Assembly: GCF_031769215.1 (NCBI RefSeq)
Contig: NW_026782087.1
Span: forward strand, 868,001-932,000
Reading direction: 5' to 3'
DNA length: 64,000 nt
From: Ylistrum balloti
Taxonomy: Eukaryota
The notes below the pieces were generated by a model. It was not told the DNA's origin. It worked only from the letters and a program-made list of their open reading frames with translations, and made no database searches. Positions 12,747 to 45,140 of the stretch are shown in pieces. Each line of letters begins with the position of its first letter. The first letter of the stretch is position 1. The translations under genes and the position numbers were made by a program.

Positions 12747-13874
12747 TCAACGTAAGTATTGCTCTGGATTATGTAGAAATGAACTGATCCTTGTCGCTAC
12801 CTGATGGAGTACATCTTTATCTTTACTTGCGAGCAAGTTGACTCCGGTATGGAAGTACAGTGGCAGGTTTCCTCTTTGGAGATAGCCGAGAAGACGATAC
12901 GTCATAGTGGTCACTCTTTCCGCCAGCAGTTCCTGCTGCCATTCAGTCTCAGAGGGACGATCCTCACATTCCCAGAACAATACGTTCTTAAGATGATATG
13001 ATGTTAACCCCTTTTTGACACCCGGTTTGCACCACATATTTTCTTTTAGTGTCTTGAGAATGCGAAGACACTTTCTCCTGCATGTTCCATTCTCGTCAAC
13101 GCCTTCCAAAAGTTCCTTCTCACAGGCGGCAAACGACAATGTCCAGTAAAATGGCGCCTTCGCTACTTCATGTATCCCGATATTCTTGATACAAGAAATC
13201 TTCTGGTTAGAAGGCCATTCGGAAGACACTCTTGGCCAGTTGAATTCACTTTTAAATTCTAATTTTGATTCAATCATAGGACATAAATCGATGCTGATTG
13301 GATACTTTCCATTCGGAAGCTCTACAGAGAAGGTGATTGCAGGGGATTCCGACAGACGGTCCATCTTGACACGACTTCTTATCTTCGGTTGGTTCACCGC
13401 CTCTGCAACAAGAGACTTAAATCTCCTTTTGACCTTAATTGGCACGATATCATTCTGAAAAGTAATGCTCGCTCCTCCGTCGTTAAGTCCTTCACGATCC
13501 CACTGATCCCTAAGACTGGGAATTACAGTAAAATACTGGCCAACGGGAGGACTTGGAAGAGCAGCACCCTTACTCTCAACTTTGTTATTGTTGCTGTCAA
13601 ACCCATAGTACCTTGGCTGGGTGTCTGACTTCCAGTGTAACTGACCGACATCAACAACGACACTGAAATCAAACTCGTCGGCCCGCTTAACTTTCAGGTG
13701 AGTATGATAACTCCCCACCTTAACCGTTTGAATCATAAATCGTTTGTCTCTCTGGTTAACGTACCTTAATATATCCTCCACCAGTGGTAACACCACTTTA
13801 GTGTTCCGCTCAGTTTCATCACGCCTCATCTTTACATTCTTTTCGTAATATTGATTCAAAATCTTGTTATCCAT
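12747..13874 (-). CDS. cGAS-like receptor (cGLR, Mab-21 nucleotidyltransferase) copy 1, intronless, 375 aa
   Basis: GSYHTHLKVKRADEFDF matches the hGS-x-DEhD nucleotidyltransferase motif, with the third acidic residue in SIDLCP. It also has WPR-x4-WP, LSF-x2-EK-L, SYHLKN-x-FW and LPLYF-x4-NLL, all typical of cGAS/Mab-21 proteins. Confidence 0.92.
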   Translation of the reverse strand: MDNKILNQYYEKNVKMRRDETERNTKVVLPLVEDILRYVNQRDKRFMIQTVKVGSYHTHLKVKRADEFDFSVVVDVGQLHWKSDTQPRYYGFDSNNNKVESKGAALPSPPVGQYFTVIPSLRDQWDREGLNDGGASITFQNDIVPIKVKRRFKSLVAEAVNQPKIRSRVKMDRLSESPAITFSVELPNGKYPISIDLCPMIESKLEFKSEFNWPRVSSEWPSNQKISCIKNIGIHEVAKAPFYWTLSFAACEKELLEGVDENGTCRRKCLRILKTLKENMWCKPGVKKGLTSYHLKNVLFWECEDRPSETEWQQELLAERVTTMTYRLLGYLQRGNLPLYFHTGVNLLASKDKDVLHQVATRISSFLHNPEQYLR

Positions 13875-14193
13875 GGTAGTAACTTGCTTGTGATGTTTTT
13901 CGCTTTATGTGAACGAACCTTAAACGTCAAACTATATACTCATTCCTGTTATATTTTAAGAGTTGACGACATATATCTATTTTTAGTTTCTTCCGATTTC
14001 CGAAAACATTGCGTATTTACCGCAATGCACTCTGGGAGATTGAACTTGCGCCAAACGTACATTGTATTTTGACCGAATTTTATCTCAAATGGAGACTGTA
14101 TCTTAGATTAAGTAATCATTAAGTACATTTACTCCCAATGAAGTTGTTGGATTGTGTATTGAATTGGAGTATTGATTTATCAGGAAATCCAGT

Positions 14194-14210
14194 AGTTTCA
14201 CTTTCGCTTT
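14194..14210. promoter_or_regulatory. ISRE/IRF-E consensus site about 320 bp upstream of cGLR copy 1
   Basis: AGTTTCACTTTCGCTTT matches AGTTTCNNTTTC with a third partial repeat. A kappaB-like GGAAATCC lies immediately 5' (near 14183-14190). Sequence match only. Confidence 0.5.
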
Positions 14211-15216
14211 ACCATGCTATTACTAACAAAACATAAATACTGCTCATTGCGTTAGGTCAACGAACAAAATTGGTCATATTTTTGTAACAAACTTTAAGTG
14301 TTGATATTGGCAGAAACCTGTCTATGGAAATAGCTACAAATATGAAAAAAACACAACCGGGCCATCAAAAAAACCACGCTTAGAATGTAGGTCAGAAAAC
14401 GCGATTAGTATTACAATAAATACATAAGATTTCTTGTTCTTGTCGATAATTCGATGTGCATACATCAGTGATGTTGTTTACAAGACACGTTTACATTTTC
14501 ACGACTTTTGAGACAGTTATAACGTTCTCCATTGAAACTGTGTCTAAATCAAATATATATTTAAGCCTTACTTAATGTTATTTTGTATGTTTTTCTTCAA
14601 GAAAACGCAAGCTGCGTTCGTGCAAAACAAAAAACAAAAAACACACACACACTAAAACAGAAACTCGCAGATAAACCTGACGTCAGAAATCGTAACACAC
14701 TAATAAATGTAAAGGTCTCATTTTCCAGTGTTATTACAAAAATAGCTTTTTGAGTTCCAAAAACTTCTAATGGTTCAATTTTTTATTTATGAAAAACTGG
14801 CACACAAACACACACAAAATACACTAATACATTGTTTATCAACTGAAATATGTGTGTTATTCATGGTCTAGAGTTAGTAGTGCTGACGAAGGAACTAATA
14901 TGCGATTAGATATACCGATAGATAAATAGACGAATTCATACATTTATACTTGTTTATCAATATTATTTATTCAATTTATTCAAACCAACCCTGTTCGATT
15001 AGAATTACAACCAATTGTACGCATAATGATGTCATTGAAATCGATGTATAGAAAATAGAAAACAATTTAATTCGATTAAATCTTATCTTAAATGTGTGTA
15101 TATATATATATATTGTAACGTTACTGTTCGTCTGTTTATATTTTCATCACAGTTATTGCCCGTATGTATATATAAGTATATAGATGTAACTTAAAGATGC
15201 TTTGTGTATCGATTAA

Positions 15217-15336
15217 ATAGTTGAACAAAATCAAATCAAATCAACACGACAAATGTGTTCCGTCTGAAGATGGCCGTTAGGCCTGAAAACGTTAGCGGAT
15301 TACATTTGTCGTGTCGATTTGATTTTTTTCAACTAT
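15217..15336 (+). ncRNA. Minimal type I hammerhead-ribozyme-like motif inside a 120-bp foldback (Penelope-like element derived)
   Basis: Stem I TCCGT (15259-63) / GCGGA (15295-99); core CTGAAGA (15264-70); stem II GGCC-GTTA-GGCC; GAAA (15285-88); palindromic stem III AACGTT; predicted site after A15294. Outer arms pair (ATAGTTGAA...ACACGACAAATGT with ACATTTGTCGTGT...TTCAACTAT). An extra U on each side of stem II deviates from consensus. Confidence 0.55.
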
Positions 15337-15524
15337 AAGTATATATATATACATACTATATACGTTAAAAGATTTATTGCAAAACTCTAATTACATGAGT
15401 ACATACATAAACAAACGAACATTACGGTGGAAAATAACAAGTACAACCCTACCCACAAAAGTAAATCCGAATGTCTTCTTATTGTCCTGTTAAAGATGGC
15501 TTTTGAGTTCGGAGACTATCTGGT

Positions 15525-15536
15525 AGTTTCGTTTTC
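15525..15536. promoter_or_regulatory. ISRE consensus site in the divergent cGLR1/cGLR2 intergenic region
   Basis: AGTTTCGTTTTC matches AGTTTCNNTTTC. Sequence match only. Confidence 0.35.
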
Positions 15537-17211
15537 TATCTATGCACAAATGGGTAAAACTGTCTAGCCGATATATTCAAGTATGTAGTTACTTGTTAAT
15601 AACTATGTACCCCTATCAAGATAAATACCAACCGTATGGATTGTAATGTCATTGTAACATGTAAAACAGGGGGAAATCAAGGTAATCAGATTAATCAAAA
15701 CTGTATACATACATTATGAAAGTTGTTGTTCTTGTCGATAAGTCGACATACATGTACCGGTAAATATTTTCAGCAAGAAGTACTCAACTATGTTTTCCTG
15801 AATCACTCGAGACATTGACCGATAACAATATTTGTCGTAATCCTATGTTTTCACGACGCTAAAATCGTAATAAACACGTAAAGGTGAAAGTTTCATTTAG
15901 AAAAAAAAATATTTTCCTTGTTATGCTGAAGATGGCTTTTAATTTCCGAGAATATCTGATATTTCATTTTCTGTTTATGAACAAACTCGCACATCAACAC
16001 ACGCGTGCACTACAAACGTTGTTCATCGATTTAAACACGTTTGTTAGCCTCGTCGTTGTCTACAATTATTAGTAATGTCGATGAAGGAAGTGATATGCAA
16101 ATAATATTCATAATTATAGCCATAGATAAATGGATCTTGTAAAACTGACCAAATAATGTAAGAAAATATGTAAATTGTGATCAATACCTTACATATATTC
16201 TATTCCTGCTTCGTGAAATTATGTTAAATAAAAGAAATCAATTATGTTCAATTAAACGATCACCATATTTGTGAACAAATAATGCAATTGAAAGATGTCG
16301 AATAGAAAAAGGAATTCAAGACAACTAAACAGTTACATGGACATTTTATACCGTAACAGACGAAAAAAAAAATAAATACTTGAATCCATGGATTTTATAA
16401 AAATGTATACCATTAATTAAATTGCTACGACCACGAAGAGTACACATGACTCAAGAAGACGAATAACTCGTTGAGTGCAATTTTTCATTATTGTAGGCAA
16501 CTCCAAAAATCGTTTAATAAATACAGTCTATAGAAATGATTTTAATGAGCGATTGTTTTTTCTGTTTATAAAGCATAGTTACGATAAAAGACTACATGTA
16601 GCATACAAAGATACATTGTCGTATACATGTACATCAAAATATACAGACTTGTCCATATGGTGTTGTGAATTTGCTGTTTTGGAAAATGATTATTGTGTTA
16701 AGTGCTCGTAAATATTCCTCAATGAGTTTTGATGGATAGTGTGTTTTAAGGTTAGTACAATTATTGTCTATACCTGTTTATGTCAGTGAGGTAGTGGTAA
16801 AAGACATACATTCTTCACAGTGGAGCAAGCATATAGAATTATTCAGATTCTTGATAACGAAACTTAAAGTAATTGTAAATACACGGAACTGAAACAAACA
16901 TCACGTGGCTTTAGAGGTCAAGGTCTTAAGTAACATCAAATATAGCATGGTATAGAATGTTCAAGAAAGATTAGGTATGACAGCAAAAATAGAATGTAAA
17001 TTTTCAGTCATATGTTATCTGCACACAAACGTTAAACTCTGCACGATAATACCAAACATTATCTTTTCATTGTGCAATCCAAATCACGTGATATGACTGA
17101 AGTAGAACTGAATACCAACTCATTCTGGTATATAAGCGTTATGAAAGAAGAAGTTGCGCATTATTCAACATATATTCGTATGTGCTGCTAACAGTACTGT
17201 ACTATAGAAAA

Positions 17212-18342
17212 ATGGATAATTATTCTCTCAACTGCTACTGTGACGAAAAGGTACTGCTGAAAAGACAGGAAACTAAAAGGAACGTGGAAAAAGTGCTGCC
17301 TCTCGTTGATGAGATATTGAGATACGTTCACTCCCGGGATAAACGCTTTCTGATACAGCCACTGAGAGTAGGCAGTTATGACACGCGCTTGAAAGTCGAG
17401 AAAGCGGACGAATTTGACTACAATGTTATCGTTGATATCGGCAAATTGGTGTGGGCTTCAGGGGGAAAACGATACTATGGGTTTGGCAACACCAGGGACA
17501 AAGTAGTGGAGAAAAAGGGATACGCGTTTCCGGATCCTCCTGTTGGGCAGCACTTAACCGAAATCGCTTCAAGTAGGAAGAAATGGGATGCCGACAGATT
17601 AAACGATGGAGTGTCGAGCATGACATTTGATGACGATATAGTCCCAATTAAAGTCAAAAGAATATTCAAGTCACTTGTTGGCGAAGCAGTCAACCAACCA
17701 AAGTTCAGAAACCTGATATCAACAGACAAAATATCGAGTTCTCCTGCCACCACACTATCTGTGAAGTTTAGTGACACTGGTTACCCAATCAGCATTGATC
17801 TGTGTCCGATGATTGAATCTCAGCTGGAATTTAAACCCGAATTTCACTGGCCTCGGCCAAACAGCCAATGGCCTTCGCAACAAAAGAGGATGATCATAAA
17901 GAAAATAGGCGCGAATGAAATAGCCAAAGAGCCATTCTATTGGACACTGTCTTTCGCCGCTTGCGAAAAGGAACTTCTGGAAGGAATCGACATACATGGG
18001 ACATGTCGAAAGAAAAGTCAACGAATCATGAAGAGACTGAAAGAGGACGTGTGGTGCCCACCTGACATGAAAAACGAACTGACATCATACCACCTGAAGA
18101 ATGTGCTGTTCTGGGAATGTGAGGATCGTCCCTCTGAGACTGAATGGCAGCAGGAACTGCTGGCGGAAAGAGTGACCACTATGACGTATCGTCTTCTCGG
18201 CTATCTCCAGAGAGGAAACCTGCCACTGTACTTCCATACCGGAGTCAACCTGCTTTCCAGCAAAGATAAGGATGTACTCCATCAGGTGGCAACAAATATC
18301 AAGTCATTTCTCGATCATCCACAGCAGTATTTGTCGGTATAA
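17212..18342 (+). CDS. cGAS-like receptor (cGLR) copy 2, intronless, 376 aa
   Basis: GSYDTRLKVEKADEFDY, SIDLCP, SYHLKN and LPLYF-x4-NLL are present. The ATG at 17212 (MDNYSLN) aligns with the copy 1 start MDNKILN; the ORF-track start at 17182 is a GTG. TATA-like TATATAA near 17129. Confidence 0.92.
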   Translation: MDNYSLNCYCDEKVLLKRQETKRNVEKVLPLVDEILRYVHSRDKRFLIQPLRVGSYDTRLKVEKADEFDYNVIVDIGKLVWASGGKRYYGFGNTRDKVVEKKGYAFPDPPVGQHLTEIASSRKKWDADRLNDGVSSMTFDDDIVPIKVKRIFKSLVGEAVNQPKFRNLISTDKISSSPATTLSVKFSDTGYPISIDLCPMIESQLEFKPEFHWPRPNSQWPSQQKRMIIKKIGANEIAKEPFYWTLSFAACEKELLEGIDIHGTCRKKSQRIMKRLKEDVWCPPDMKNELTSYHLKNVLFWECEDRPSETEWQQELLAERVTTMTYRLLGYLQRGNLPLYFHTGVNLLSSKDKDVLHQVATNIKSFLDHPQQYLSV

Positions 18343-19081
18343 AGCTCACACCTTTTGTTTGTAGACCAAAGAACCAAATCTGAGAAGTAAGATGTCGCTT
18401 GTTTAAAAACGACTACTGCAGATCAATTTATTTTCTCATTTCTATGACGCTTTTCACAAATGATTCCCAGCCCTTTAAAACGTTCTCTATATCGGCGAAA
18501 ACAAAACCTATTGTCGTAGTTAGAAAAAACTCGAAATAAAATGATTTGCAGTATTCTAACGAAACATTAACACCTACTATAATCAGGTGTGTACCAATTA
18601 TCATTATGGTATTTAGTATTGAAATGTATTCTACTTTAATAATCTGAGTCACACTACGTATTTTGTTTGCTGAATGATATAATTTTTACAGTTTTTACGA
18701 GGTGACAAATATCAAAATGAATGTTGAGTCTACAAATCGGATATCTTTTAGATGTAATTTTAGATGTAACATTGAATTGCAGCTACAGAATCCCAGTTTT
18801 CAGTTACTGCTTCGGTTATATAGAATACCTCAGCATAACGCATGTTAATACTTAATGTTACTCACATCTAACAGACATGTGAACACTTGCTTAGTTTACA
18901 TCCCATTGTAACCACTATTATATCTTTGGTGAAATGATCTAAAATGACACCCCATCCACCATTTCTATAGCACTTTAAACACCACTGCGTTCCTTGATAA
19001 ACGTAGGTTATGTCACTTTGGCTAAATGTTATTGTTTCATTACCTGTACTGTGTCAAATGTACAATTTTTCGTCCATATAA

Positions 19082-19593
19082 GTTCATTATAAGATCTGTT
19101 TTAACAAAAATACCAAACTTCAATGGCTCCAGTATAGGATCTCTCATCACATTCTGACAACTAATAGTAGTCTTTTTAAGGCAAAACTTGTATCCAGTCC
19201 ACTTTGTAATCTATGCAACTCAGAAAGAGAATCAATCACTCATCTCCTTTGGGAATGTCAGGAAGTGCAAAATTTTTACAATCATTTGAAACACTAACAG
19301 ATTCTTTATTAATACCATTCTCAGTCAACAAACGGTCTTTTATACTTGGAATTAAAAGGAACAATAGCCCTAGCTTTAGAGTTGACAATGAAGTAATTCT
19401 TATGATTAAACATTATATATATAAAACAAGATGCCTCCATGCTACTCTCGATATCAACGCCATTGTAAAGATTATACAAAATCACTATTCTGTTCAAAAA
19501 TATATTTCAAATAGCAAAAACACGTCTTACAAACAAAATTTCACAAATGATTGGAAAAAATGGGAAAATCTTATCCAATTGAATATTAAATAA
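19082..19593 (+). mobile_element. 5'-truncated L1/Tx1-like retrotransposon ORF2 C-terminus (zf-RVT region), frameshifted
   Basis: Translates as KNTKLQWLQYRISHHILTTNSSLFK...SPLCNLCNSERESITHLLWEC, then after a 1-bp frameshift ...ILMIKHYIYKTRC...FTNDWKKW. This matches the Cys/His finger region at the end of L1/Tx1 ORF2. Confidence 0.75.
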
Positions 19594-20184
19594 TTATAAT
19601 ACTTTTTATCCTTGACAGTGCTGTCATATCTTTGTTTCACTGTCTTTAGCAAAAAATTTGTTTCAACATCCCATGGACTTCTTATGTCATTCCCCCCTCC
19701 CCATCCCTTATCTTCCTATTTCTGTTTTAATCGCTTTGTCTGTTTCTGTAATTGTAGAGAATGATTCAGTGAGAGAGAGCAATCTATGTATAATGTTAAT
19801 TATTGATATTTCCTCTATGCTATCATTTAGTCTGGCTGTACTATGCTCTGTGTAATTTTTGACAACAAGGGCAGATAACAAAGAATCATCACCAGCTATT
19901 CACACCTCAATTATTTACAAAGGTTTTTTTTTTCCTTTTTTTATGTTTTTTTTTTTTAATGTGAATTACACTTTGTTTCAAACAAGCAGAAGTTGCAACA
20001 TGGAAAGGCTGTTATGTGGGGCGTATCTCGCTACTCCCAATCCATGCTTGCACTTCTGGTTTGGGATTACACTATTGAAAACATATAATTTTGAATAATG
20101 TTTGGGGATTAGGAGTGAATAGATGATGATGAGGCAAAACACTAATAATAATAAACAGCTCTGTTGTTGATCAGTGTATAATGT

Positions 20185-20368
20185 GATAATGAGGATGAAA
20201 GGTTGATGATGAAGTGGTGATAATGATATGATGATTACGATGCTGAATATGTGTTACTGCTGCTGCTGCTGCTGATGATGATGATGATGACGATATGGTG
20301 ATGATCATGATAATGAAGTGGTGATGATACGATGATCATGATGATAACTATGTGATGATGACGATGAC

Positions 20369-20403
<35 letters not shown>
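20185..20403. repeat. Compound (GAT)n/(GCT)n microsatellite
   Basis: Interrupted GAT runs with a short CTG run. Confidence 0.9.
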
Positions 20404-20733
20404 CAGCAGTCATTGAGTTTGTATTATTATTGGGGCTTGTGAATGAAACACAGTAGTACATTGTATGTCATGTCAGCAAAGAGGAATGAGTGCATGTTTT
20501 GAGTGAGTGTACATGGGTGTAGTGTGATGTGTGCCAGGGTGTGTATGTGTATGTGAGTCTAGTATATATCGTGTGTTGCATACCTTTGTAAAATCTTGAA
20601 AAACAAAATAATAAAAAAAAAAGATCTGTTTTAACTCCATAGAATGTTTCTCCTTATGTTGTATCATTAACTATATTATGATTTAAGTTACCACGACAAC
20701 GGCTGATTCATCTACCTGCAGAGTTATGTCGTG

Positions 20734-20862
20734 TTTTGTAGATATCGTATCATTTTGTAGATATCGTATCAGTTTGTAGATATCGTATCATTTTGCAGAT
20801 ATCGTATCAGTTTGTAGATATCGTATCAGTTTGTAGATATCGTATCATTTTGCAGATATCGT
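20734..20862. repeat. 19-bp minisatellite (T/G)TTTG(T/C)AGATATCGTATCA, about 6.8 units
   Basis: Direct tandem units counted by hand. Confidence 0.9.
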
Positions 20863-22378
20863 TATTTTGATGATAATATATCTACATTAGAAATATGCAA
20901 TCCACAATGGTGTATATGAAGTTTTCTTAGGTCTTGTTTGATGATCTTAAACATTTCATATTTGTTTGCGTTGCATCATAATCAATTTCTTCATGCTTGA
21001 ATAAACATTTACAATATTACAATTGTGTGTTTGTTTATTGCAGTGCAGACTCAGTTTCCTTTTCTTTGGTAATAAATCTCATAAACGACATGACTCGTGT
21101 TTATATATTACTGTAAAAGACAAGACTGATATTGGCTAAGACGGCCCAGTTTTATTGCATATTAAAAAAATGACCAAGCACATTAGATCCCCGAGGGGAT
21201 TTCAACGTAAACATGAAATTTTACCTCACCTTTGCAACCCGAGTGAAGAACCATTTTTTTCACCGGTCAGTCGTGGTCAACCCCTCAGTCAGTCATTCAG
21301 TTACCCATCCGCTCGATATATATTATCGATATATTTTAAAACGTATTGCATATTTCTTTTTATAGCATTTTCAACATTTTTGTTCTTGGTCCCTTTTAAA
21401 GTATGAATTTTGAAATTGAAGTTGAAACTTGTTACTGGAATTTCTATGGGATCAGTGTTAAAGCATTTGGTTCCCATTTGAACCTACAAACTTCACTCGG
21501 TAGGGTTTTTGCTCGTTGGTTTTGTTGACTGGTAAACATGAAAAGTCATTTCATCAGTATAAATTACTTTACCATCCTATTATGACCGTTACAGGATGCT
21601 GTGTTGTCGATTCTTAGTGGTATTTATATTGCAAATGCTGATAAGAAAATACAGACATGTTTGTAAACTCAAAACCGAATTCCGGAAGGGTTATCGTTAT
21701 CTGCCTCATGGAGAAAAAAACTCTGCTAATTTCGGTCAATCCAAACAAGTGATGTCCCGTTCTAATATGAGCAAACGGAAATACAATATTTCACAATGAG
21801 ATCAATATGGCGACCCTACAACTTCCCCATAGTCTTAATCAAACCACACCTCATAAAGTCATGTTTTGAGACTATCTACCAGCTGTCGATATCTTGAATG
21901 CAAATCGTGATTATGGCAATAAGCTCTTGATTGAATCATTTCTGACAATTAAACACCATGTGTATAGAAGCAGGTATATTACTAACAAGAAATTAAATAT
22001 TCAAATCATACGTTTTTACACCAAGTATTCAACTACATTTGTATGTCAACTTACCATACATTTGGACGAAGTATACATTTGACTTTTCTTGGAGTTGACT
22101 CGAACACACAACCAAATTAACTAATAATACATGTTGACATGCAGGAGTACACAGCCAACGTCTCGAAGATTTTAACGAAGTATACAACTTTTTCTTACAA
22201 ACCTTTGAAGTAAGTTTCGATTGAAAGTGGTGTACATGTAAATGGAACCAACCCAATGGGCCTGCGTTAACCAATAGTGACAACCTTTAACTACTACGTG
22301 TAACGGACAGTCGGTGTCTAGACAGAATATTTTCCTTGTTATGCGAAAGATGGCTTTTAATTTCCGAGAATATCTGAT

Positions 22379-22395
22379 AGTTTCATTTTCAGTTT
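22379..22395. promoter_or_regulatory. ISRE consensus site about 1.26 kb upstream of cGLR copy 3
   Basis: AGTTTCATTTTCAGTTT. The paralogous position in duplication copy 1 (near 15960) lacks the G (ATTTCATTTTCTGTTT). Confidence 0.35.
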
Positions 22396-23642
22396 ATGAA
22401 CAAACTCGCACCTCAACACACGCGTGCACTACAAACGTTGTTCATCGATTTAAACACGTTTGTTAGCCTCGTCGTTGTCTACAATTATTAGTAATGTCGA
22501 TGAAGGAAGTGATATGCAAATAATATTCACAATTATAGCCATAGATAAATGGATCTTGTAAAACTGACCAAACAATGTAAGAAAATATGTAAATTGTGAT
22601 CAATACCTTACATATATTCTATTCCTGCGTCGTGAAATTATGTTAAATAAAAGAAATCAATTATGTTCAATTAAACGATCACCATATTTGTAAACAAATA
22701 ATGCAATTGAAAGATGTCGAATAGAAAAAGGAATTCAAGACAACTAAACAGTTACATGGACATTTTATACCGTAACAGACGAAAAAAAATAAATGAATAC
22801 TTGAATCCATGGATTTTATAAAAATGTATACCATTAATTAAATTGCTACGACCACGAAGAGTACACATGACTCAAGAAGACGAATAACTCGTTGAGTGCA
22901 ATTTTTCATTATTGTAGGCAACTCCAAAAATCGTTTAATAAATACAGTCTATAGAAATGATTTTAATGAGCGATTGTTTTTCTGTTTATAAAGCATAGTT
23001 ACGATAAAAGACTACATGTAGCATACAAAGATACATTGTCGTATACATGTACATCAAAATATACAGACTTGTCCATATGGTGTTGTGAATTTGCTGTTTT
23101 GGAAAATGATTATTGTGTTAAGTGCTCGTAAATATTCCTCAATGAGTTTTGATGGATAGTGTGTTTCAAGATAGGTTAGTACAATTATTGTCTATACCTG
23201 TTTATGTCAGTGAGGTAGTGGTAAAAGACATACATTCTTCACAGTGGAGCAAGCATATAGAATTATTCAGATTCTTGATAATGAAACTTAAAGTAAATTG
23301 TTGTGAGAAATACACGGAACTGAAACAAACATCACGTGGCTTTAGAGGTCAAGGTCTTAAGTAACATCAAATATAGCATGGTATAGAATGTTCAAGAAAG
23401 ATTAGGTATGACAGCAAAAATAGAATGTAAATTTTCAGTCATATGTTATCTGCACACAAACGTTAAACTCTGCACGATAATACCAAACATTATCTTTTCA
23501 TTGTGCAATCCAAATCACGTGATATGACTGAAGTAGAACTGAATATCAACTCATTCTGGTATATAAGCGTTATGAAAGAAGAAGTTGCGCATTATTCAAC
23601 ATATATTCTTACGTGCTGCTAACAGTAATATACTATAGAAAA

Positions 23643-24773
23643 ATGGATAATTATTCTCTCAACTGCTACTGTGACAAAAAGGTATTGCTGAAAAGACTTG
23701 AAACTAAAAGGAACGTTGAGAAAGTGCTGCCTCTCGTTGATGAGATATTGAGATACGTTCACTCCCGGGATAAACGCTTTCTGATACAGCCACTGAGAGT
23801 AGGTAGTTATGACACGCGCTTGAAAGTCGAGAAAGCGGACGAATTTGACTACAATGTTATCGTTGATATCGGCAAGCTGGTGTGGGGTTCAGGGGGAAAA
23901 CGATACTATGGGTTTGGCAACACCAGGGACAAAGTAGTGGAGAAAAAGGGATACGCGTTGCCGGATCCTCCTGTTGGGCAGTACTTCACCCAAATCGCTC
24001 CAATTAGGAAGAAATGGGATGCCGACAGATTAAACGATGGAGTGGCGAGCATGACATTTGATGACGACATAGTCCCAATTAAAGTCAAAAGAATATTCAA
24101 GTCACTTGTTGGCGAAGCAGTCAACCAACCAAAGTTCAGAAACCTGATATCAACAGACAAAATATCGAGTTCTCCTGCCACCACACTATCTGTGAAGTTT
24201 AGTGACACTGGTTACCCAATCAGCATTGATCTGTGTCCGATGATTGAATCTCAGCTGGAATTTAAACCCGAATTTCACTGGCCTCGGCCAAACAGCCAAT
24301 GGCCTTCGCAAGAAAAGAGGATGATCATAAAGAAAATAGGCGCGAATGAAATAGCCAAAGAGCCATTCTATTGGACACTGTCTTTCGCCGCTTGCGAAAA
24401 GGAACTTCTGGAAGGAATCGACATACATGGGACATGTCGAAAGAAAAGTCAACGAATCATGAAGAGACTGAAAGAGGACGTGTGGTGCCCACCTGACATG
24501 AAAAACGAACTGACATCATACCACCTGAAGAATGTGCTGTTCTGGGAATGTGAGGATCGTCCCTCTGAGACTGAATGGCAGCAGGAACTGCTGGCGGAAA
24601 GAGTGACCACTATGACGTATCGTCTTCTCGGCTATCTCCAGAGAGGAAACCTGCCACTGTACTTCCATACCGGAGTCAACCTGCTTTCCAGCAAGGATAA
24701 GGATGTACTCCATCAGGTAGCAACAAATATAAAGTCATTTCTCGATCATCCACAGCAGTATTTGTCGGTATAA
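23643..24773 (+). CDS. cGAS-like receptor (cGLR) copy 3, intronless, 376 aa
   Basis: Same intact motifs as copy 2, with 11 amino-acid differences from copy 2 by hand count. ATG at 23643. Confidence 0.92.
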   Translation: MDNYSLNCYCDKKVLLKRLETKRNVEKVLPLVDEILRYVHSRDKRFLIQPLRVGSYDTRLKVEKADEFDYNVIVDIGKLVWGSGGKRYYGFGNTRDKVVEKKGYALPDPPVGQYFTQIAPIRKKWDADRLNDGVASMTFDDDIVPIKVKRIFKSLVGEAVNQPKFRNLISTDKISSSPATTLSVKFSDTGYPISIDLCPMIESQLEFKPEFHWPRPNSQWPSQEKRMIIKKIGANEIAKEPFYWTLSFAACEKELLEGIDIHGTCRKKSQRIMKRLKEDVWCPPDMKNELTSYHLKNVLFWECEDRPSETEWQQELLAERVTTMTYRLLGYLQRGNLPLYFHTGVNLLSSKDKDVLHQVATNIKSFLDHPQQYLSV

Positions 24774-25513
24774 AGCTCACACCTTTTGTTTGTAGACCAA
24801 AGAACCAAATCTGAGAAGTTAAATTTCGCTTGTTTAAAAACGGCTACTGCAGATCAATTTATTTTCTCATTTCTATGACGCTTTTCACAAATGATTCCCA
24901 GCCCTTTAAAACGTTCTCTATATTGGCGAAAACAAAACCTATTGTCGTAGTTAGAAAAAACTCGAAAATAAAATGATTTGCAGTATTCTAACGAAACATT
25001 AACACCTACTATAATCAGGTGTGTACCAATTATCATTATGGTATTTAGTATTGAAATGTATTCTACTTTAATAATCTGAGTCACACTACGTATTTTGTTT
25101 GCTGAATGATATATTTTTTACAGCTTTTACGAGGTGACAAATATCCAAATGAATGTTGAGTCTACAAATCGGATATCTTTTAGATGTAATTTTAGATGTA
25201 ACATTGAATTGCAGCTACAGAATCCCAGTTTTCAGTTACTGCTTCGGTTATATAGAATACCTCAGCATAACGCATGTTAATACTTAATGTTACTCACATC
25301 TAACAGACATGTGAACACTTGCTTAGTTTACATCCCATTGTAACCACTATTATATCTTTGGTAAAATGATCTAAAATGACACCCCATCCACCATTTCTAT
25401 AGCACTTTAAACACCACTGCGTTCCTTGATAAACGTAGGTTACGTCACTTTGGCTAAATGTTATTGTTTCATTACCTGTACTGTGTCAAATGTACAATTT
25501 TTCGTCCATATAA

Positions 25514-26013
25514 GTTCATTATAAGATCTGTTTTAACAAAAATACCAAACTTCAATGGCTCCAGTATAGGATCTCTCATCACATTCTGACAACTAATAGG
25601 CAAAACTTGTGTCCAGTCCACTTTGTAATCTATGCAACTCAGAAAGAGAATCGATCACTCATCTCCTTTGGGAATGTCAGGAAGTGCAAAACTTTTTACA
25701 ATCATTTGAAACACTAACAGATTCTTTATTAATACCATTCTCAGCCAACAAACGGTCTTTTATACTTGGAATTAAAAGGAACAATAGCCCTAGCTTTAGA
25801 GTTGACAATGAAGTAATTCTTATGATTAAACTTTATATATATAAAACAAGATGCCTCCATGCTACTCTCAATATCAACGCCATTGTAAAGATTATACAAA
25901 ATCACTATTCTGTTCAAAAATATATTTCAAATAGCAAAAACACGTCTTACAAACAAAATTTCACAAATGATTGGAAAAAATGGGAAAATCTTATCCAATT
26001 GAATATTAAATAA
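25514..26013 (+). mobile_element. 5'-truncated L1/Tx1-like ORF2 fragment, duplicate copy
   Basis: ORF 25609-26013 SPLCNLCNSERESITHLLWECQEVQNFLQSF...WKKW. It has a 13-bp deletion near 25598 relative to the first copy. Confidence 0.75.
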
Positions 26014-26614
26014 TTATAATACTTTTTATCCTTGACAGTGCTGTCATATCTTTGTTTCACTGTCTTTAGCAAAAAATTTGTTTCAACATCCCATGGACTT
26101 CTTATGTCATTCCCCCCTCCCCATCCCTTATCTTCCTATTTCTGTTTTAATCGCTTTGTCTGTTTCTGTAATTGTAGAGAATGATTCAGTGAGAGAGAGC
26201 AATCTATGTATAATGTTAATTATTGATATTTCCTCTATGCTATCATTTAGTCTGGCTGTACTATGCTCTGTGTAATCTTTGACAACAAGGGCAGATAACA
26301 AAGAATCATCACCAGCTATTCACACCTCAATTATTTACAAAGGTTTTTTTTTTTTCCTTTTTTTTATTTTTTTTTTTTTTTAATGTGAATTACACTTTGT
26401 TTCGGCAAACAAGCAGAAGTTGCAACATGGAAAGGCTGTTATGTGGGGCGTATCTCGCTACTCCCAATCCATGCTTGCACTTCTGGTTTGGGATTACACT
26501 ATTGAAAACATATAATTTTGAATAATGTTTGGGGATTAGGTGTGAATAGATGATGATGAGGCAAAACACTAATAATAATAAACAGCTCTGTTGTTGATCA
26601 GTGTATGATGTGAT

Positions 26615-26795
26615 AATGAGGATGAAAGGTTGATGATGAAGTGGTGATGATGATATGATGATTACGATGCTGAATATGTGTTACTGCTGCTGCTGCTGCT
26701 GCTGATGATGATGATGATGACGATATGGTGATGATCATGATAATGAAGTGATGATGATACGATGATCATGATGATAACTATGTGATGATGATGAC

Positions 26796-26848
<53 letters not shown>
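26615..26848. repeat. Compound (GAT)n microsatellite, duplicate copy with a longer run
   Basis: Paralog of 20185-20403 with more GAT units. Confidence 0.9.
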
Positions 26849-27192
26849 CAGCAGTCATTGAGTTTGTATTATTATTGGGGCTTGTGAATGAAACACAGTA
26901 GTACATTGTATGTCATGTCAGCAAAGAGGAAAGAGTAGGAAATAATGAGTGCATGTTTTGAGTGAGTGTACATGGGTGTAGTGTGATGTGTGCCAGGGTG
27001 TGTATGTGTATGTGAGTCTAGTATATATCGTGTGTTGCATACCTTTGTAAAATCTTGAAAAACAAAATAAAAAAAAAAAAAAATCTGTTTTAACTCCATA
27101 CAATGTTTCTCCGTATGTTGTATCATTAACTATATTATGATTTAAGTTACTACGACAACGGCTGATTCATCTACCTGCAGAGTTATGTCGTG

Positions 27193-27321
27193 TTTTGTAG
27201 ATATCGTATCAGTTTGTAGATATCGTATCAGTTTGTAGATATCGTATCAGTTTGTAGATATCGTATCAGTTTGTAGATATCGTATCAGTTTGTAGATATC
27301 GTATCATTTTGCAGATATCGT
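27193..27321. repeat. 19-bp minisatellite, duplicate copy
   Basis: Six full units plus a partial unit, more homogeneous than the first copy. Confidence 0.9.
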
Positions 27322-29619
27322 TATTTTGATGATAATATATCTACATTAGAAATATGCAATCCACAATGGTGTATATGAAGTTTTCTTAGGTCTTGTTTGA
27401 TGATCTTAAACATTTCATATTTGTTTGCGTTGCATCATAATCAATTTCTTCATGCTTGAATAAACATTTACAATATTACAATTGTGTGTTTGTTTATTGC
27501 AGTGCAGACTCAGTTTCCTTTTCTTTGGTAATAAATCTCATAAACGACATGACTCGTGTTTATATATTACTGTAAAAGATAAGACTGATATTGGCTAAGA
27601 CGGCCCAGTTTTATTGCATATTAAAAAAATGACCAAGCACATTAGATCCCCGAGGGGATTTCAACGTAAACATGAAATTTTACCTCACCTTTGCAACCCG
27701 AGTGAAGAACCATTTTTTTCACCGGTCAGTCGTGGTCAACCCCTCAGTCAGTCATTCAGTTACCCATCCGCTCGATATATATTATCGATATATTTTAAAA
27801 CGTATTGCATATTTCTTTTTATAGCATTTTCAACATTTTTGTTCTTGGTCCTTTTTAAAGTATGAATTTTGAAATTGAAGTTGAAACTTGTTACTGGAAT
27901 TTCTATGGGATCAGTGCTAAAGCATTTGGTTCCCATTTGAACCTACAAACTTCACTCGGTAGGGTTTTTGCTCGTTGGTTTTGTTGACTGGTAAACATGA
28001 AAAGTCATTTCATCAGTATAAATTACTTTACCATCCTATTATGACCGTTACAGGATACTGTGTTGTCGATTCTTAGTGGTATTTATATTGCAAATGCTGA
28101 TAAGAAAATACAGACATGTTTGTAAACTCAAAACCGAATTCCGGAAGGGTTATCGTTATCTGCCTCATGGAGAAAAAAACTCTGCTAATTTCGGTCAATC
28201 CAAACAAGTGATGTCCCGTTCTAATATGAGCAAACGGAAATACAATATTTCACAATGAGATCAATATGGCGACCCTACAACTTCCCCATAGTCTTAATCA
28301 AACCACACCTCATAAAGTCATGTTTTGAGACTATCTACCAGCTGTCGATATCTTGAATGCAAATCGTGATTATGGCAATAAGCTCTTGATTGAATCATTT
28401 CTGACAATTAAACACCATGTGTATAGAAGCAGGTATATTACTAACAAGAAATTAAATATTCAAATCATACGTTTTTACACCAAGTATTCAACTACATTTG
28501 TATGTCAGCTTATCATACATTTGGACGAAGTATACTTTTAACTTTTCTTGGAGTTGACTCGAACACACAACCAAATTAACTAATAATACATGTTGACATG
28601 CAGGAGTACACAGCCAACGTCTCGAAGATTTTAACGAAGTATACAACTTTTTCTTACAAACCTTTGAAGTAAGTTTCGATTGAAAGTGGTGTACATGTAA
28701 ATGGAACCAACCCAATGGGCCTGCGTTAACCAATAGTGACAACCTTTAACTACTACGTGTAACGGACAGTCGGTGTCTAGACAGAATCAGCGTAATGGTT
28801 CTTATAAAACCGGCACAATTAAATATCCAGTGCTGTTGAACAGTGGAAAAGATTAATATAAAGCAACCAGGACAGAAAAACACAGCGTACTATGAAGCTT
28901 GACCAAATACATGAAGTGTTATGTAGCTACATATGGATGATATTGTAACATCAATTAATAATGCACAATGGAACGACACCTGAAAATCGATACAAACCAG
29001 CTGTTTTCCCTCATCGGAGACGTTTTCACTCACAATCAGTAATATTCAAATTTAACGTTAAGTAATCAAAGAGGTTTCTAAACAAGTATAGGCTCTGTTC
29101 TGTAAATTTGTTGGCTTGTCCACAAGCTCGAGTGGCAGAATTTATCATGCTGGAGTGATACCGTGATGACAAGTCTAGTTAACTTAACATTCTAAATATG
29201 ATTTTCATGGCGAAAGCACTTAAGCATTTGCCAGACTTACTATTACTTTACTACAAGATGACTTATATAATAATGATAATTTTTTCAAGCATATATTAAA
29301 GCTAGATTGAGTTTCTTCGCCCTCTTGAACGATGTGTGGTACTGTTCAGAAACTGAAATCAGAACAGTACTTTAGATTTATCTCTCCTTTGCCGCGTGTT
29401 TGTCAATGGTTTTTATGGTTATATTTCTTAGAGGAAGTTTAGCATAGTCTGGTGAAAGTTTGGTTCGTCACTTTAATTATTTCATATCAAATTGTATCCT
29501 CTCTAACCACAACTACTACGGTACTTTGATTGCTATAGTCATGTGACCTGTGGCCCTTTTGTTAGTTATTCTGGATGTTGAGTAGCACAAGTAAATGTTC
29601 ATTACGGGTATCAAATGGT

Positions 29620-29975
29620 CCGGTTAGCCCAGGAAAGGTCCAGGCAAAGTCCGGTCAGCCAAGGCAAAGTCCAGTCAGCCCAGGCAAGGTCCAGGCAAAG
29701 TCCGGTCAGCCCAGGCAAGGTCCAGGCAAAGTCCGGTCAGCCCAGGCAAAGTCCAGTCAGCCCAGGCAAGGCCCAGGCAAAGTCCGGTCAGCCCAGGCAA
29801 AGTCCAGTCAGCCCAGGCAAGGTCCAGGCAAAGTCCGGTCAGCCCAAGCAAGGTCCAGGCAAAGTCCGGTCAGCCCAGGCAAAGTCCAGGCAAGGTCCGG
29901 CCAGCCCAGGCAAGGACCAATCAGTCCAGGCAAGACGGTCCATGGAAAGTCCAGTCAGTTCAGGCAAGGTCTGGA
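29620..29975. repeat. GC-rich modular minisatellite (20-bp and 31-bp units)
   Basis: Built from modules AGTCC(G/A)GTCAG, CCCAGGCAA and GGTCCAGGCAA in varying order. Confidence 0.9.
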
Positions 29976-31132
29976 AGAGCTAAACGCGGACCTACAAAAT
30001 TGTTACAGTTGCTTTCCACTATATTTCAACACATGTTCAGACTTCCATTTTTTGAGGGACTGATTTTGAATGACAAACGCTAGACGGGCGACGGAATTAT
30101 ATTTTGAAGGTCCGACAGTCCAATGGTATTCGTTATTGTTTAATCAGAATGCTTTAACTTTTAGTTGTCTTTTCAACAAAAGGCTAAAAAATGTGCCCTT
30201 CTAGTTTCATAATCCTTTGTGTGTTCATATATGTAATTATCACATTATTATAATCCAATAAATTCACTCCGTTATATATTGGCATGTGATACAAGCGTAG
30301 CATGGCCTACCGTTTTTCATTTGATGTGCGAATCAGAAAATTGATTGAGATTTTATACTATAGACAATGACGCTACGTCATAGCATGATTGAAAATGTCG
30401 CTACAAATTGGTTGCCTCGGTTTGATTAAGCCCTTCATATTTTGACTTTTAAACCGGTCAAAATGTAAATGTTATGAATTAAGTGATTAAAAGTATCTTA
30501 ACCTTGTTTTTATTTCAGTTTTAATTTCCGCTGTTAGGGCTTGCATCAAAAACTTCTAAGACTCTATTTTTTTTTATAAAATCTCATATGAAATCAAGTT
30601 TTAGGTCCGTGATAAAATGAATCACAGGGTCATCTCAAAACTGACATAGATTGATAATGGAAGATATCTGTGGTTTCTTTATATATGAAAATTTTATAAA
30701 TAAATTTGTGGGTCAAACAATATCCTGTCTTGATGTATCCTGCCTAGATGTCGTAAATAAACTAATTCAAATTTCGTGAACACCATATTGCAATAAATTT
30801 GTGTTTCATCGCTAGCTTTCACGAAGATAACATAACAGTGATATTTTCGGGTTTTGGAGTATTGGGCCTTCGGAATAACGGGCCTTCGGAATAGCGGTGT
30901 CACCTCCATATATATAACGTTTGTGTTCACCCTCTGACAAATACAGACTGCTCCCCGTGATTGGCGTGGATTCATTATAAAACGTTACCACACAGTAGTG
31001 AAAGAAAGTGTATTTATTTCAACTGTCAGTTTTAGTTAAATATCCGATAAGCAGATGTCGCATAAACAAATACAAATATAAATCATGTGATTTAGGAATT
31101 AATAACCGCTCCCCACACTGGGAGAAAATAAG

Positions 31133-41758
<10,626 letters not shown>

Positions 41759-42682: not shown

Positions 42683-43539
42683 TGTCAGGAAAAGACAAGT
42701 CATCTTTACTACTCTGCGGAGTCTTGCCCATAGACGCTGGTTCCCAGCCTCTAAATATTGAAACCATATAGAATTTGTAAATGCATGATTACAGTGTGGT
42801 TAATAGCATTGTATTCTCTGTTCACAGGTAATAAAAACTCCAAGCAGACTTCTGTTCCTCTGATTAGCAGCCAAAAGTGATGAAATTCATTGTGTGTTTT
42901 GCTCAGTGATGGTGATTTCAAGCTTTCTGTGACAGCATTTGTATTGATAATTGTTGTCAGGAAGTACAACTCCTCTGTTTCTTTGATAAATGATATCGCA
43001 GAACAAATCCGTACCACACAGCATTGACTTCGGACTTTGATCAGGTTACTTTGTGTAATCTACTATGAACAGATCACTTTACATGCAGTTTACTATGGAC
43101 AGGACTTTCTCCAAATTTTCACTGGTGCATTCTTGTGTTTTCTAGAGAAAGATAAACTTGTTTTATAACCCAGGAAAAGACAGAGGATGGCTCACACAAG
43201 CTATGAGTTCATTTCTAATAGTGGGGACATGTCACCACTATATGTTGCGTAACCATATAAAAGTTGGAAAATGTCATCAAATTTGATTCACATGTATTAC
43301 GCCATTGGTGATGGTCTGACATGCACCTTTCAAGACTATAATTTCAGATATTTCAAAAAAGGAAAATGTAGGGAAAAAATATGTGATGTGGATAGAAATA
43401 TCTCGCCCTTAAGATAAATACATTGTATTTCAAAATTTAGCACAAAGCTTTAAATTTTGAAACATCATTCTCATGTAAAAGATATCTCTCTCCACATCAC
43501 ACAGAGATTAAAGCTGTTTATCTATTACTCAACATACAG

Positions 43540-45140
43540 CTTATTGTAGACAGGTGATTCTTCACACAGATTAATGTGGACAACTGACTCGCCATACAGT
43601 TCACTGTTGACATGTGATTCTCCATAGTTACTGTGGACGACTTACTTGCCATACAGTTTACTGTGAACATGTGACTCTCCATACAGTTACTGTGGACATG
43701 TAATCACCATACAGTTACTGTGGACAGTTGACTTGCCATACTGTGAACATGTGACTCTCCATACAGCCAACAGTGTATGAGTGTCTCCTTACAACTTACT
43801 TTGGTCAAGTAACTCTCCATACAGCATACTGTGGTAAAGTGACACACCATACAGTTTACTGTAGACAGATAACTTGATATACAGCCCACACTGCTTCAGT
43901 GAACATGTGACTCTTCCTGCAGTTCACTGTGGACATGTGACTCTCGATACACCATAGTGTGGACATGGGACTCCCTACAGCTCACAGTGGAGAGCAGACA
44001 CACCATACAGTTTACTGTGGACTGGTAACTCTTTAGGTCACTGGACAGATGATTCACCTTACAGTTTACTGTGGAGGAGACACACCTTACAGTTTACTGT
44101 GGAGGAGACACACCTTACTGTATACTGTGGAGGAGACACACCATACAATTTACTGTGGAGGAGACACACCTTACAGTTTACTGTGGACAGGTAACTCTTT
44201 AGGTCACTGGACAGATAATTCACCTAACAGTTTACTGTGGAGGAGACACACCTTACAGTTTACTGTGGAGGAGACACACCTTACAGTTTACTGTGGAGGA
44301 GACACACCTTACAGTTTACTGTGGAGGAGACACACCTTTCAGTTTACTGTGGAGGAGACACACCTTTCAGTTTACTGTGGAGGAGACACACCTTTCAGTT
44401 TACTGTGGAGGAGACACACCTTTCAGTTTACTGTGGACAGGTAACTCTTTAGGTCACTGGACAGATAATTCACCTAACAGTTTACTGTGGAGGAGACACA
44501 CCTTACAGTTTACTGTGGAGGAGACACACCTTTCAGTTTACTGTGGACAGGTAACTCTTTAGGTCACTGGACAGATAATTCACCTAACAGTTTACTGTGG
44601 AGGAGACACACCTTACTGTTTACTGTGGAGGAGACAAACCTTACTGTATACTGTAGAGGAGACACACCTTACAGTTTACTGTGGAGGAGACACACCTTAC
44701 TGTTTACTGTGGAGGAGACACACCTTACAGTTTACTGTGGAGGAGACACACCTTACAGTTTACTGTGGACAGGTAACTCTTTAGGTCACTGGACAGATAA
44801 TTCACCTAACAGTTTACTGTGGAGGAGACACACCTAACAGTTTACTGTGGAGGAGACACACCTTACAGTTTACTGTGGAGGAGACACACCTTTCAGTTTA
44901 CTGTGGAGGAGACACACCTTACAGTTTACTGTGGAGGAGACACACCTTACAGTTTACTGTGGACTGGTAATTCTCCATACAACCTATTTACATATAACTA
45001 AGCCCAACCTAACATAGAACCTTATCTGATCTATTCAGAGCCTGAGTGGAACCAACACTTAATCCAATGTGGACAGGTGACTCTCCATTCAGTTATTGTG
45101 GATAGGAGACTCACCATACGTCTTAATATGAACAGGCAAC
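43540..45140. repeat. 28-bp minisatellite with interspersed 54-bp variant units
   Basis: Core unit CAGTTTACTGTGGAGGAGACACACCTTA; variant CAGTTTACTGTGGACAGGTAACTCTTTAGGTCACTGGACAGATAATTCACCTAA. The homogeneous core is about 44010-44970, with degenerate flanks. Confidence 0.92.

Follow-up and report, generated by a model that had tools for sequence, protein, structure and literature searches.

Intronless MAB21L3-like genes of two conserved types in the scallop Ylistrum balloti, proposed to encode ligand-activated nucleotidyltransferases

A 64,000-nucleotide stretch of the Ylistrum balloti genome (RefSeq assembly GCF_031769215.1, contig NW_026782087.1, positions 868,001 to 932,000; hereafter the window, in whose coordinates all positions are given) carries a cluster of three intronless genes of the Mab-21/cGAS-like receptor (cGLR) kind. 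They represent two old paralogue types of a Mab-21-family nucleotidyltransferase with an intact catalytic motif, conserved in scallops, and we propose that they encode ligand-activated enzymes; we put the probability of this reading at roughly 0.6. A specifically immune role is proposed with less confidence than that.

Results

Three single-exon genes of two types

Copy 1 (12747..13874, reverse strand, stop codon TGA) encodes 375 amino acids. Copy 2 (17212..18342, forward strand, stop codon TAA; protein P0046) and copy 3 (23643..24773, forward strand; protein P0004) encode 376 amino acids each; the open reading frame (ORF) list begins copy 2 at an upstream GTG (17182), and its length is counted here from the ATG at 17212. 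Copy 1 stands in divergent, head-to-head orientation relative to the other two. In all three copies the Pfam families Mab-21 (the nucleotidyltransferase core, residues 56-258) and Mab-21_C (the helical lobe, residues 265-364) score above their curated cut-offs, with E-values of 3.7e-21 and 3.4e-24, respectively, for copy 1. Because the recorded annotated proteins equal the single-ORF translations residue for residue in each gene, the coding sequences (CDS) are intronless; this status covers the CDS only, the untranslated regions lying outside it.

Overall, copy 1 shares 69-70% of its amino acids with copies 2 and 3, and 48-49 of the 81 N-terminal ones (59-60%). It contains 57 lysines and arginines against 46 aspartates and glutamates, and the computed isoelectric points (pI) are 9.16, 8.73 and 8.91 for copies 1, 2 and 3. 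The ORFs of copies 2 and 3 differ from each other by 22 nucleotides and 11 amino acids, 8 of the latter within residues 83-136. A preliminary description of this DNA, made from the letters alone, had reported three complete single-exon Mab-21-fold ORFs, a first copy that faces away from the others, is about 60% identical to them over 81 residues and is net basic, and two diverged receptor types. All of this holds: the ORF list, Pfam and the recorded proteins agree on the genes, our recounts of identity and charge return the same values, and copy 1 constitutes type 1, copies 2 and 3 type 2. Three 56-residue proteins (P0047-P0049), considered as members of the cluster of copy 3, were dropped as an artefact of the clustering, as they have no similarity to it and belong to many unrelated contigs.

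Catalytic motif, enlarged loop and predicted fold

Each copy keeps G54-S55, then, after 11 residues, E67-F68-D69-F/Y70 (within ADEFD), and finally D196 (within SIDLCP), just as the preliminary description had it. The GS pair and the three acids are nearly invariant across 38 family members. We aligned the scallop proteins with three anchors: MAB21L1 (P0134), a relative of Sp-cGLR1 (P0114) and a vertebrate cGAS orthologue (P0191). D196, in its I-D-L context, falls opposite the third acid of both the cGAS orthologue and the Sp-cGLR1 relative. MAB21L1 reads DA/E/E/Q at the same positions, in agreement with de Oliveira Mann et al. (PMC4897736), and in mammalian and bird MAB21L3 the GS/acid motif is lost. 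The published cGLR motif, G[S/G] followed by [E/D]h[E/D] (PMC9980059), is present in the scallop proteins, preceded by V instead of a strict Q/T.

From D69 to the next conserved helix the scallop copies have 75 residues, compared with 47 in the cGAS orthologue and 49 in MAB21L1. The excess after the DEFD strand is thus about 26-28 residues, and not the insert of roughly 55 residues first described; nor is it peculiar to this locus: in relatives from mussel, chiton and other invertebrates the stretch is of similar length (73-82 residues). The model shows it as ordered, with a predicted local distance difference test (pLDDT) score of 84-93. The zinc thumb is absent: a 9-residue loop with one cysteine replaces the His/Cys-rich insert that cGAS has between its EKE and CRK helices and that P0191 possesses.

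The AlphaFold2 model of copy 1, for which 38 relatives were used, reached a pLDDT of 91.3 and a predicted template modelling (pTM) score of 0.90. Searched with Foldseek, it retrieved coral Sp-cGLR1 (8gjy) at the top, with an E-value of 5.8e-22, followed by MAB21L1, cGAS and oyster Cv-cGLR1 (8gjw), the identities of 8gjy and 8gjw being those of the Foldseek table. VIA-align superposed the model on the mouse cGAS complex with double-stranded DNA (dsDNA) and product over 331 residues, covering 2-375, with a Z-score of 34.6 and a root-mean-square deviation (rmsd) of 2.3 Å. A complete cGAS-like cage is predicted by the model.

A mollusc clade that the best tree joins to MAB21L3

Among solved structures, the best match by sequence is again Sp-cGLR1 (8gjy; 115 bits, E 3.8e-32, residues 3-374), ahead of MAB21L1 (83 bits), cGAS (about 50), Cv-cGLR1 (47) and MB21D2 (22). 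An exhaustive search of representative sequences yielded 1156 relatives. The nearest include MAB21L3 of lungfish, caecilian, newt, sturgeon, bird and lynx, together with chiton and Saccoglossus proteins named 'mab-21-like 3'; the strongest vertebrate matches, those of fish and amphibian MAB21L3, score 157-170 bits with 35-36% of residues identical along the full length.

In a careful maximum-likelihood (ML) tree of 50 sequences under LG+C20, the scallop genes lie inside a mollusc clade (support 97/96), itself part of a 33-sequence clade that contains vertebrate MAB21L3 (ultrafast bootstrap, UFBoot, 89; SH-like approximate likelihood ratio test, SH-aLRT, 87). MAB21L1/2, the Sp-cGLR1 relative and the cGAS clade fall outside of it. 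The approximately unbiased (AU) test rejects a union of the mollusc clade with MAB21L1/2 (p=0.0215); neither the cGAS clade (p=0.35) nor the Sp-cGLR1 relative (p=0.20) is rejected as its partner. All anchors lie about 2.6-3.1 substitutions per site away on the tree. The name that fits these genes best is MAB21L3-like cGLRs, in view of a mollusc-wide clade that the best tree joins, with moderate support, to MAB21L3. As for a grouping with non-immune Mab-21 proteins, which the preliminary description had asked about, the one with MAB21L1/2 is rejected and the one with MAB21L3 is what the best tree displays. The same description called the ligand and second messenger uncharacterised, and that stands: our search of the literature on scallop cGAS/cGLRs and on bivalve 'mab-21-like 3' returned no functional study and no biochemically characterised close relative.

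Conservation in scallops

The nearest proteins are those of Pecten maximus (77% and 73% identical to copy 1), then of Mizuhopecten yessoensis, then of Mytilus; NCBI labels all of these 'mab-21-like 3', as it does the chiton orthologues. The orthologue of copy 1 is P. maximus P0002, at 77% amino-acid identity. In the tree of close relatives, copy 1 groups with P. maximus P0002 and P0003 in a type 1 clade (support 97), separate from a type 2 clade (99). Within the latter, the two genes of each species pair with each other, and both P. maximus and Mizuhopecten have their own type 2 pair at the same place.

The arrangement is shared as well. P. maximus has a DHHC gene, a type 1 gene and, on the opposite strand, two type 2 genes. 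The counterpart of the first in the window is an intronless DHHC palmitoyltransferase gene of 357 amino acids (9273..10346, reverse strand; Pfam DHHC, 3.4e-27), a synteny marker outside the cGLR system. It aligns to P. maximus beside the type 1 gene, where the two have been duplicated together: that species has a second block of type 1 and DHHC, plus an N-terminal gene fragment.

Against P. maximus, type 1 has an orthologue dN/dS (nonsynonymous to synonymous rate ratio) of 0.093 and type 2 one of 0.082, dS being about 1.4-1.6. By these comparisons both types are evidently old and strongly constrained, and dN/dS carries no arms-race signal. The locus counts 2-3 genes in Y. balloti, P. maximus has four and a fragment, and M. 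yessoensis has several, partly broken; the picture of the gene family is one of copy-number turnover and gene conversion.

Two observations concern gene models in the other species. P. maximus has a third, partial copy (L001 20473-21122, 5991-20676), situated at a distance of 13 kb and made up of the promoter and codons 1-68 of a type 2 gene; in the deposited model, probably an annotation chimera, it is spliced to the main part of a different copy. The second type 2 copy of M. yessoensis (L002 3353-4580) aligns piecewise (56% over 406 columns), its model consists of the C-terminal domain only, and the gene may be broken.

Recurrent gene conversion of the C-terminal lobe

Third-codon-position identity between copy 1 and copies 2/3 is 35-55% over most of the gene and 95-100% in codons 300-347, in the C-terminal helical lobe. 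This tract lies at 12837..12979 (reverse strand) in copy 1, 18107..18249 (forward strand) in copy 2 and 24538..24680 (forward strand) in copy 3, the last two being identical. Across it, copy 1 matches copies 2/3 at 142 of 143 nucleotides, compared with about 65% elsewhere. P. maximus has a tract of its own between type 1 and type 2, 93-100% identical and running from the same alignment column (898/899) to the stop codon. Between species, the orthologues are only 72-80% identical in this region. Since the tract is near-identical within each species and less so between them, the conversion is recurrent and lineage-specific. In the type 2 pair of P. maximus, the CDS are 97.9% identical (dS 0.041) and the flanks cease to align within a few hundred bases, a combination that likewise indicates conversion.

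Most of the difference between types 1 and 2 lies in three regions: the N-terminal spine helix, the enlarged loop and residues 161-190. Judged from these alignments, recurrent conversion keeps the C-lobes near-identical and the N-terminal and loop regions stay type-specific. It is an unlikely extension that selection for a shared C-lobe lies behind conversions that start repeatedly near codon 300 in at least two scallop genera, with a spine helix and enlarged loop that are type-specific and would even vary between alleles, 8 of the 11 amino-acid differences of copies 2 and 3 lying in residues 83-136. The locus would then be a modular pair of sensors that take two inputs and give one output, and the shared lobe might bind a partner common to both types, mediate hetero-oligomerisation or yield the same nucleotide product. 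As it stands, domain-limited recurrent conversion is a tidy example of concerted evolution, a phenomenon already known.

A tandem unit around copies 2 and 3

By self-BLAST, copies 2 and 3 sit in two tandem units. Unit A (15908..22328, forward strand, 6.42 kb) comprises the promoter region, copy 2 and a fragment of a high-copy retrotransposon; unit B (22326..28787, forward strand, 6.46 kb) is built likewise around copy 3, with the same retrotransposon fragment. The units are 97.7% identical, gaps included, and differ by 85 substitutions (1.3%) and 69 indel columns. They meet head to tail at 22326..22328 (forward strand) in a clean 3-nt AAT microhomology, with no Ns. Gene conversion from copy 1 was considered as the source of the differences between copies 2 and 3 and set aside: no consistent agreement with copy 1 is seen at the 21 codons that differ.

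We placed Logan contigs from four DNA sequencing runs on positions 19000-24900. The results come from three animals, X1, X3 and X5, under two organism labels; the reference animal is not among the runs (word share 0.59-0.65). In all three, one contig passes the unit end at 22328 into other sequence, identical to that found past 28787. For X1 and X5 there is a further contig, which enters the unit start at 22327 from outside sequence; that of X1 has the unit-A state at 8 of the 12 listed sites, and the indels of X1 and X5 also agree with unit A. No contig of the three animals bridges the junction at 22326-22328, though contigs cannot prove absence. Each unique part of the unit is covered by one contig only, and the depth bins near the junction are fully accounted for by the two contigs that join flank and unit. 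Many of the A/B differences segregate as polymorphisms in the tested animals. It follows that X1, X3 and X5 have a single unit or carry the junction so rarely that contig building lost it.

We consider it probable that the duplicate is a young copy-number variant that is not fixed. The competing explanation, that two alleles of one heterozygous locus were misassembled end to end and that the cluster has two genes, deserves serious weight, short of an even chance. It accounts for the unbroken contigs that run from flank to unit start and from unit end to flank in other individuals with none across the junction, for the loose end that continues as the sequence past 28787, and for an A/B divergence of 1.3% that about equals the difference between the tested animals and the reference and often segregates among them. 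It has to reckon with a junction that is free of Ns and has a 3-nt microhomology as in real microhomology-mediated duplications, and with two type 2 genes genuinely present at this place in P. maximus and M. yessoensis; besides, contigs drop rare variants, and the animals tested differ from the reference animal. The cluster had at first been called actively expanding, which is not supported: the copy 2/3 duplicate is missing from the contigs of three other animals, and the picture is one of turnover and conversion rather than of net growth. The count of three is sound for the ORFs of the assembly, with the qualification that the third belongs to this duplicate.

Each unit also contains a high-copy repeat (window positions 19100-20770 and 25530-27230), with a contig depth of 100-1500 compared with about 14-35 in the flanks. 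The repeat holds the tail of a LINE-type (long interspersed nuclear element) reverse transcriptase, seen as a weak zf-RVT match in the ORFs 19213-19593 and 25609-26013. Microsatellite-like arrays of 9 and 19 nt lie at 20248-20919 and 26678-27378.

Discussion

Proposed mechanism

By analogy with characterised cGLRs, we suggest that the scallop proteins are nucleic-acid-activated cyclic-dinucleotide synthases, probably activated by RNA. cGLRs synthesise cyclic dinucleotides for STING once a ligand has activated them, and those that sense nucleic acids have a pI above 8.5 (PMC9980059), to be compared with 8.73-9.16 in the scallop proteins. Sp-cGLR1 senses double-stranded RNA (dsRNA) and produces 3'3'-cUA; the oyster enzymes Cg-cGLR1 and Cv-cGLR1 sense dsDNA and produce 2'3'-cUA (PMC9980059). 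In the proposed scheme, each protein would be held inactive until its ligand, most likely a nucleic acid, binds a basic face that the spine helix at the N-terminus forms with the enlarged loop region. The lack of a zinc thumb makes RNA a likelier ligand than DNA. The bound ligand would reorder the GS loop, and E67, D69 and D196, with two Mg2+ ions, would join two nucleoside triphosphates into a cyclic dinucleotide, to be read by a STING-type receptor. The regions in which types 1 and 2 mainly differ would correspond to those that form the ligand platform in cGAS.

Immune regulation has one weak pointer in the promoter. An element resembling an interferon-stimulated response element (ISRE), AAAGCGAAAGTGAAACT, lies at 14194..14210 (reverse strand), 320-336 nt upstream of the copy 1 ATG, and is a weak candidate site for an interferon regulatory factor (IRF). 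Both type 1 genes of P. maximus have AAAGCGAAAATGAAAGT, a 15/17 match on the same strand at -412/-413. The element belongs to one of two colinear local similarities within 1.5 kb of otherwise unalignable upstream DNA; the background frequency of the ISRE core motif is 0.24 per kb. Upstream scans for NF-kB and STAT consensus sites gave nothing above chance. A 1.6-kb Logan contig with a 66%-identical ORF (L003), considered as evidence of expression, was rejected, having no poly(A) or other sign of a transcript.

Weighing the readings

Several points weigh against ligand-activated enzymes with an immune task. The deep placement is moderately supported, and the AU test leaves the groupings with Sp-cGLR1 and the cGAS clade standing. 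Two features depart from the published motif (PMC9980059): the V before GS in place of Q/T, and a third acid (h[DE]h) whose spacing of 126 residues from D69 to D196 exceeds X50-90 because the variable region is enlarged; in mussel, chiton and other relatives this spacing is 121-129 residues. RNA sequencing runs were searched for the stretch and none contained it, and a search of the literature for activity, ligand, product or STING link gave none for any member of the clade. For MAB21L3, the nearest vertebrate relative, the one role reported is developmental (PMC4897736, ref. 23). Strong purifying selection and a roughly stable copy number are usually atypical of fast-evolving immune sensors. 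Finally, the ISRE-like element is a short match, noticed post hoc. Of the preliminary description's interpretation, the cGAS fold, the intact motif and the basic pI are supported; its antiviral sensor is weakened by a best tree that joins MAB21L3, and a dN/dS of 0.08-0.09 also speaks against it.

The same tree and dN/dS are among the arguments for regarding these genes as invertebrate counterparts of MAB21L3 with a non-immune role in development or cell fate, the motif then serving a housekeeping or signalling function. The top vertebrate matches are fish and amphibian MAB21L3, 'mab-21-like 3' is the NCBI name of the orthologues in scallop, mussel and chiton, and MAB21L3 is reported to act below Notch in the epidermal cell fate of Xenopus (PMC4897736, ref. 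23). Those names, however, are automatic best-hit labels, and the catalytic motif that is fully kept here is lost in amniote MAB21L3. Developmental Mab-21 genes are single-copy, and these form a multi-copy family with local turnover. Their pI is basic, two genera have an ISRE-like promoter element in common, and grouping with the dsRNA sensor Sp-cGLR1 is not rejected. We regard such a non-immune role as rather unlikely. Proteins that keep the motif and are no enzymes, acting by nucleic-acid binding or as scaffolds as proposed for some Mab-21 members, seem less likely still. Most of an in vitro cGLR screen gave no product, with 15 new active enzymes from 140 (PMC9980059), MAB21L1 binds nucleotides with no detectable activity (PMC4897736), and the V before GS would suit such proteins; yet the GS pair and the three acids are nearly invariant in 38 family members, these residues are kept under strong purifying selection, and in relatives that have lost function, such as amniote MAB21L3, they are lost too. 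Ligand-activated enzymes of two old types are thus the reading that we prefer.

Other features and significance

Elsewhere in the window, a single ORF at 31133-32251 (forward strand) encodes 372 residues, with a MYND zinc finger at the N-terminus (Pfam, 1.8e-10) and no family match in the remainder. A tandem array with alternating 31/20/11-nt spacing (29587-29965) lies within a 162-residue ORF (29575-30063) that has no Pfam match. Long minisatellite-like tandem arrays with 74-91% self-identity by self-BLAST occupy 59059-60670, 43527-44974 and 48359-49027.

Bivalves have the largest known cGLR repertoires, and we know of almost no bivalve cGLR with an established ligand or product. The genes described here belong, as ordinary members, to a mollusc family that is known and conserved, and the genomic finding is modest. 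The clade is nonetheless conserved from chitons to scallops with its motif intact, and is, to judge from the best tree, the nearest relative among invertebrates of vertebrate MAB21L3, itself poorly understood; enzyme data on the clade could reveal whether signalling enzymes were the ancestral state of MAB21L3-type proteins.

Comparison with known systems

Sp-cGLR1 of the coral Stylophora pistillata (PDB 8GJY) is the top structural match both by sequence and by Foldseek. It shares with the scallop proteins the GS...DEFD...D motif, a short loop instead of the zinc thumb, a similar length and the lack of extra domains. It differs in having about 28% identity and a distance of about 2.6 substitutions per site on the tree, in not being the sister group there (although AU p=0.20), and in a region after DEFD that is about 22 residues shorter than in the scallop proteins.

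Vertebrate MAB21L3 is the best-supported clade partner (89/87), in a grouping that is not statistically secure. The lungfish, caecilian and newt proteins keep GS/E/D/D and are 35-36% identical over the full length; bird and mammal proteins, by contrast, are without the motif, and the scallop genes are multi-copy, in a cluster with turnover.

cGAS and the oyster dsDNA sensor Cv-cGLR1 (PDB 8GJW) have the same catalytic residues and are likewise basic, and the model follows cGAS from end to end. They are only 19-24% identical to the scallop proteins, which lack both the zinc thumb and a disordered basic N-terminal tail, and they belong to another major clade of the ML tree.

MAB21L1 and MAB21L2, lastly, share the intronless CDS and the fold, and are the second-best PDB match by sequence (E 1.5e-22). 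Contrary to the scallop proteins, with their GS and D196, MAB21L1 has DA for GS and Q for the third acid in the alignment (PMC4897736), and the two form a tight, separate clade whose union with the mollusc clade is rejected (AU p=0.02).

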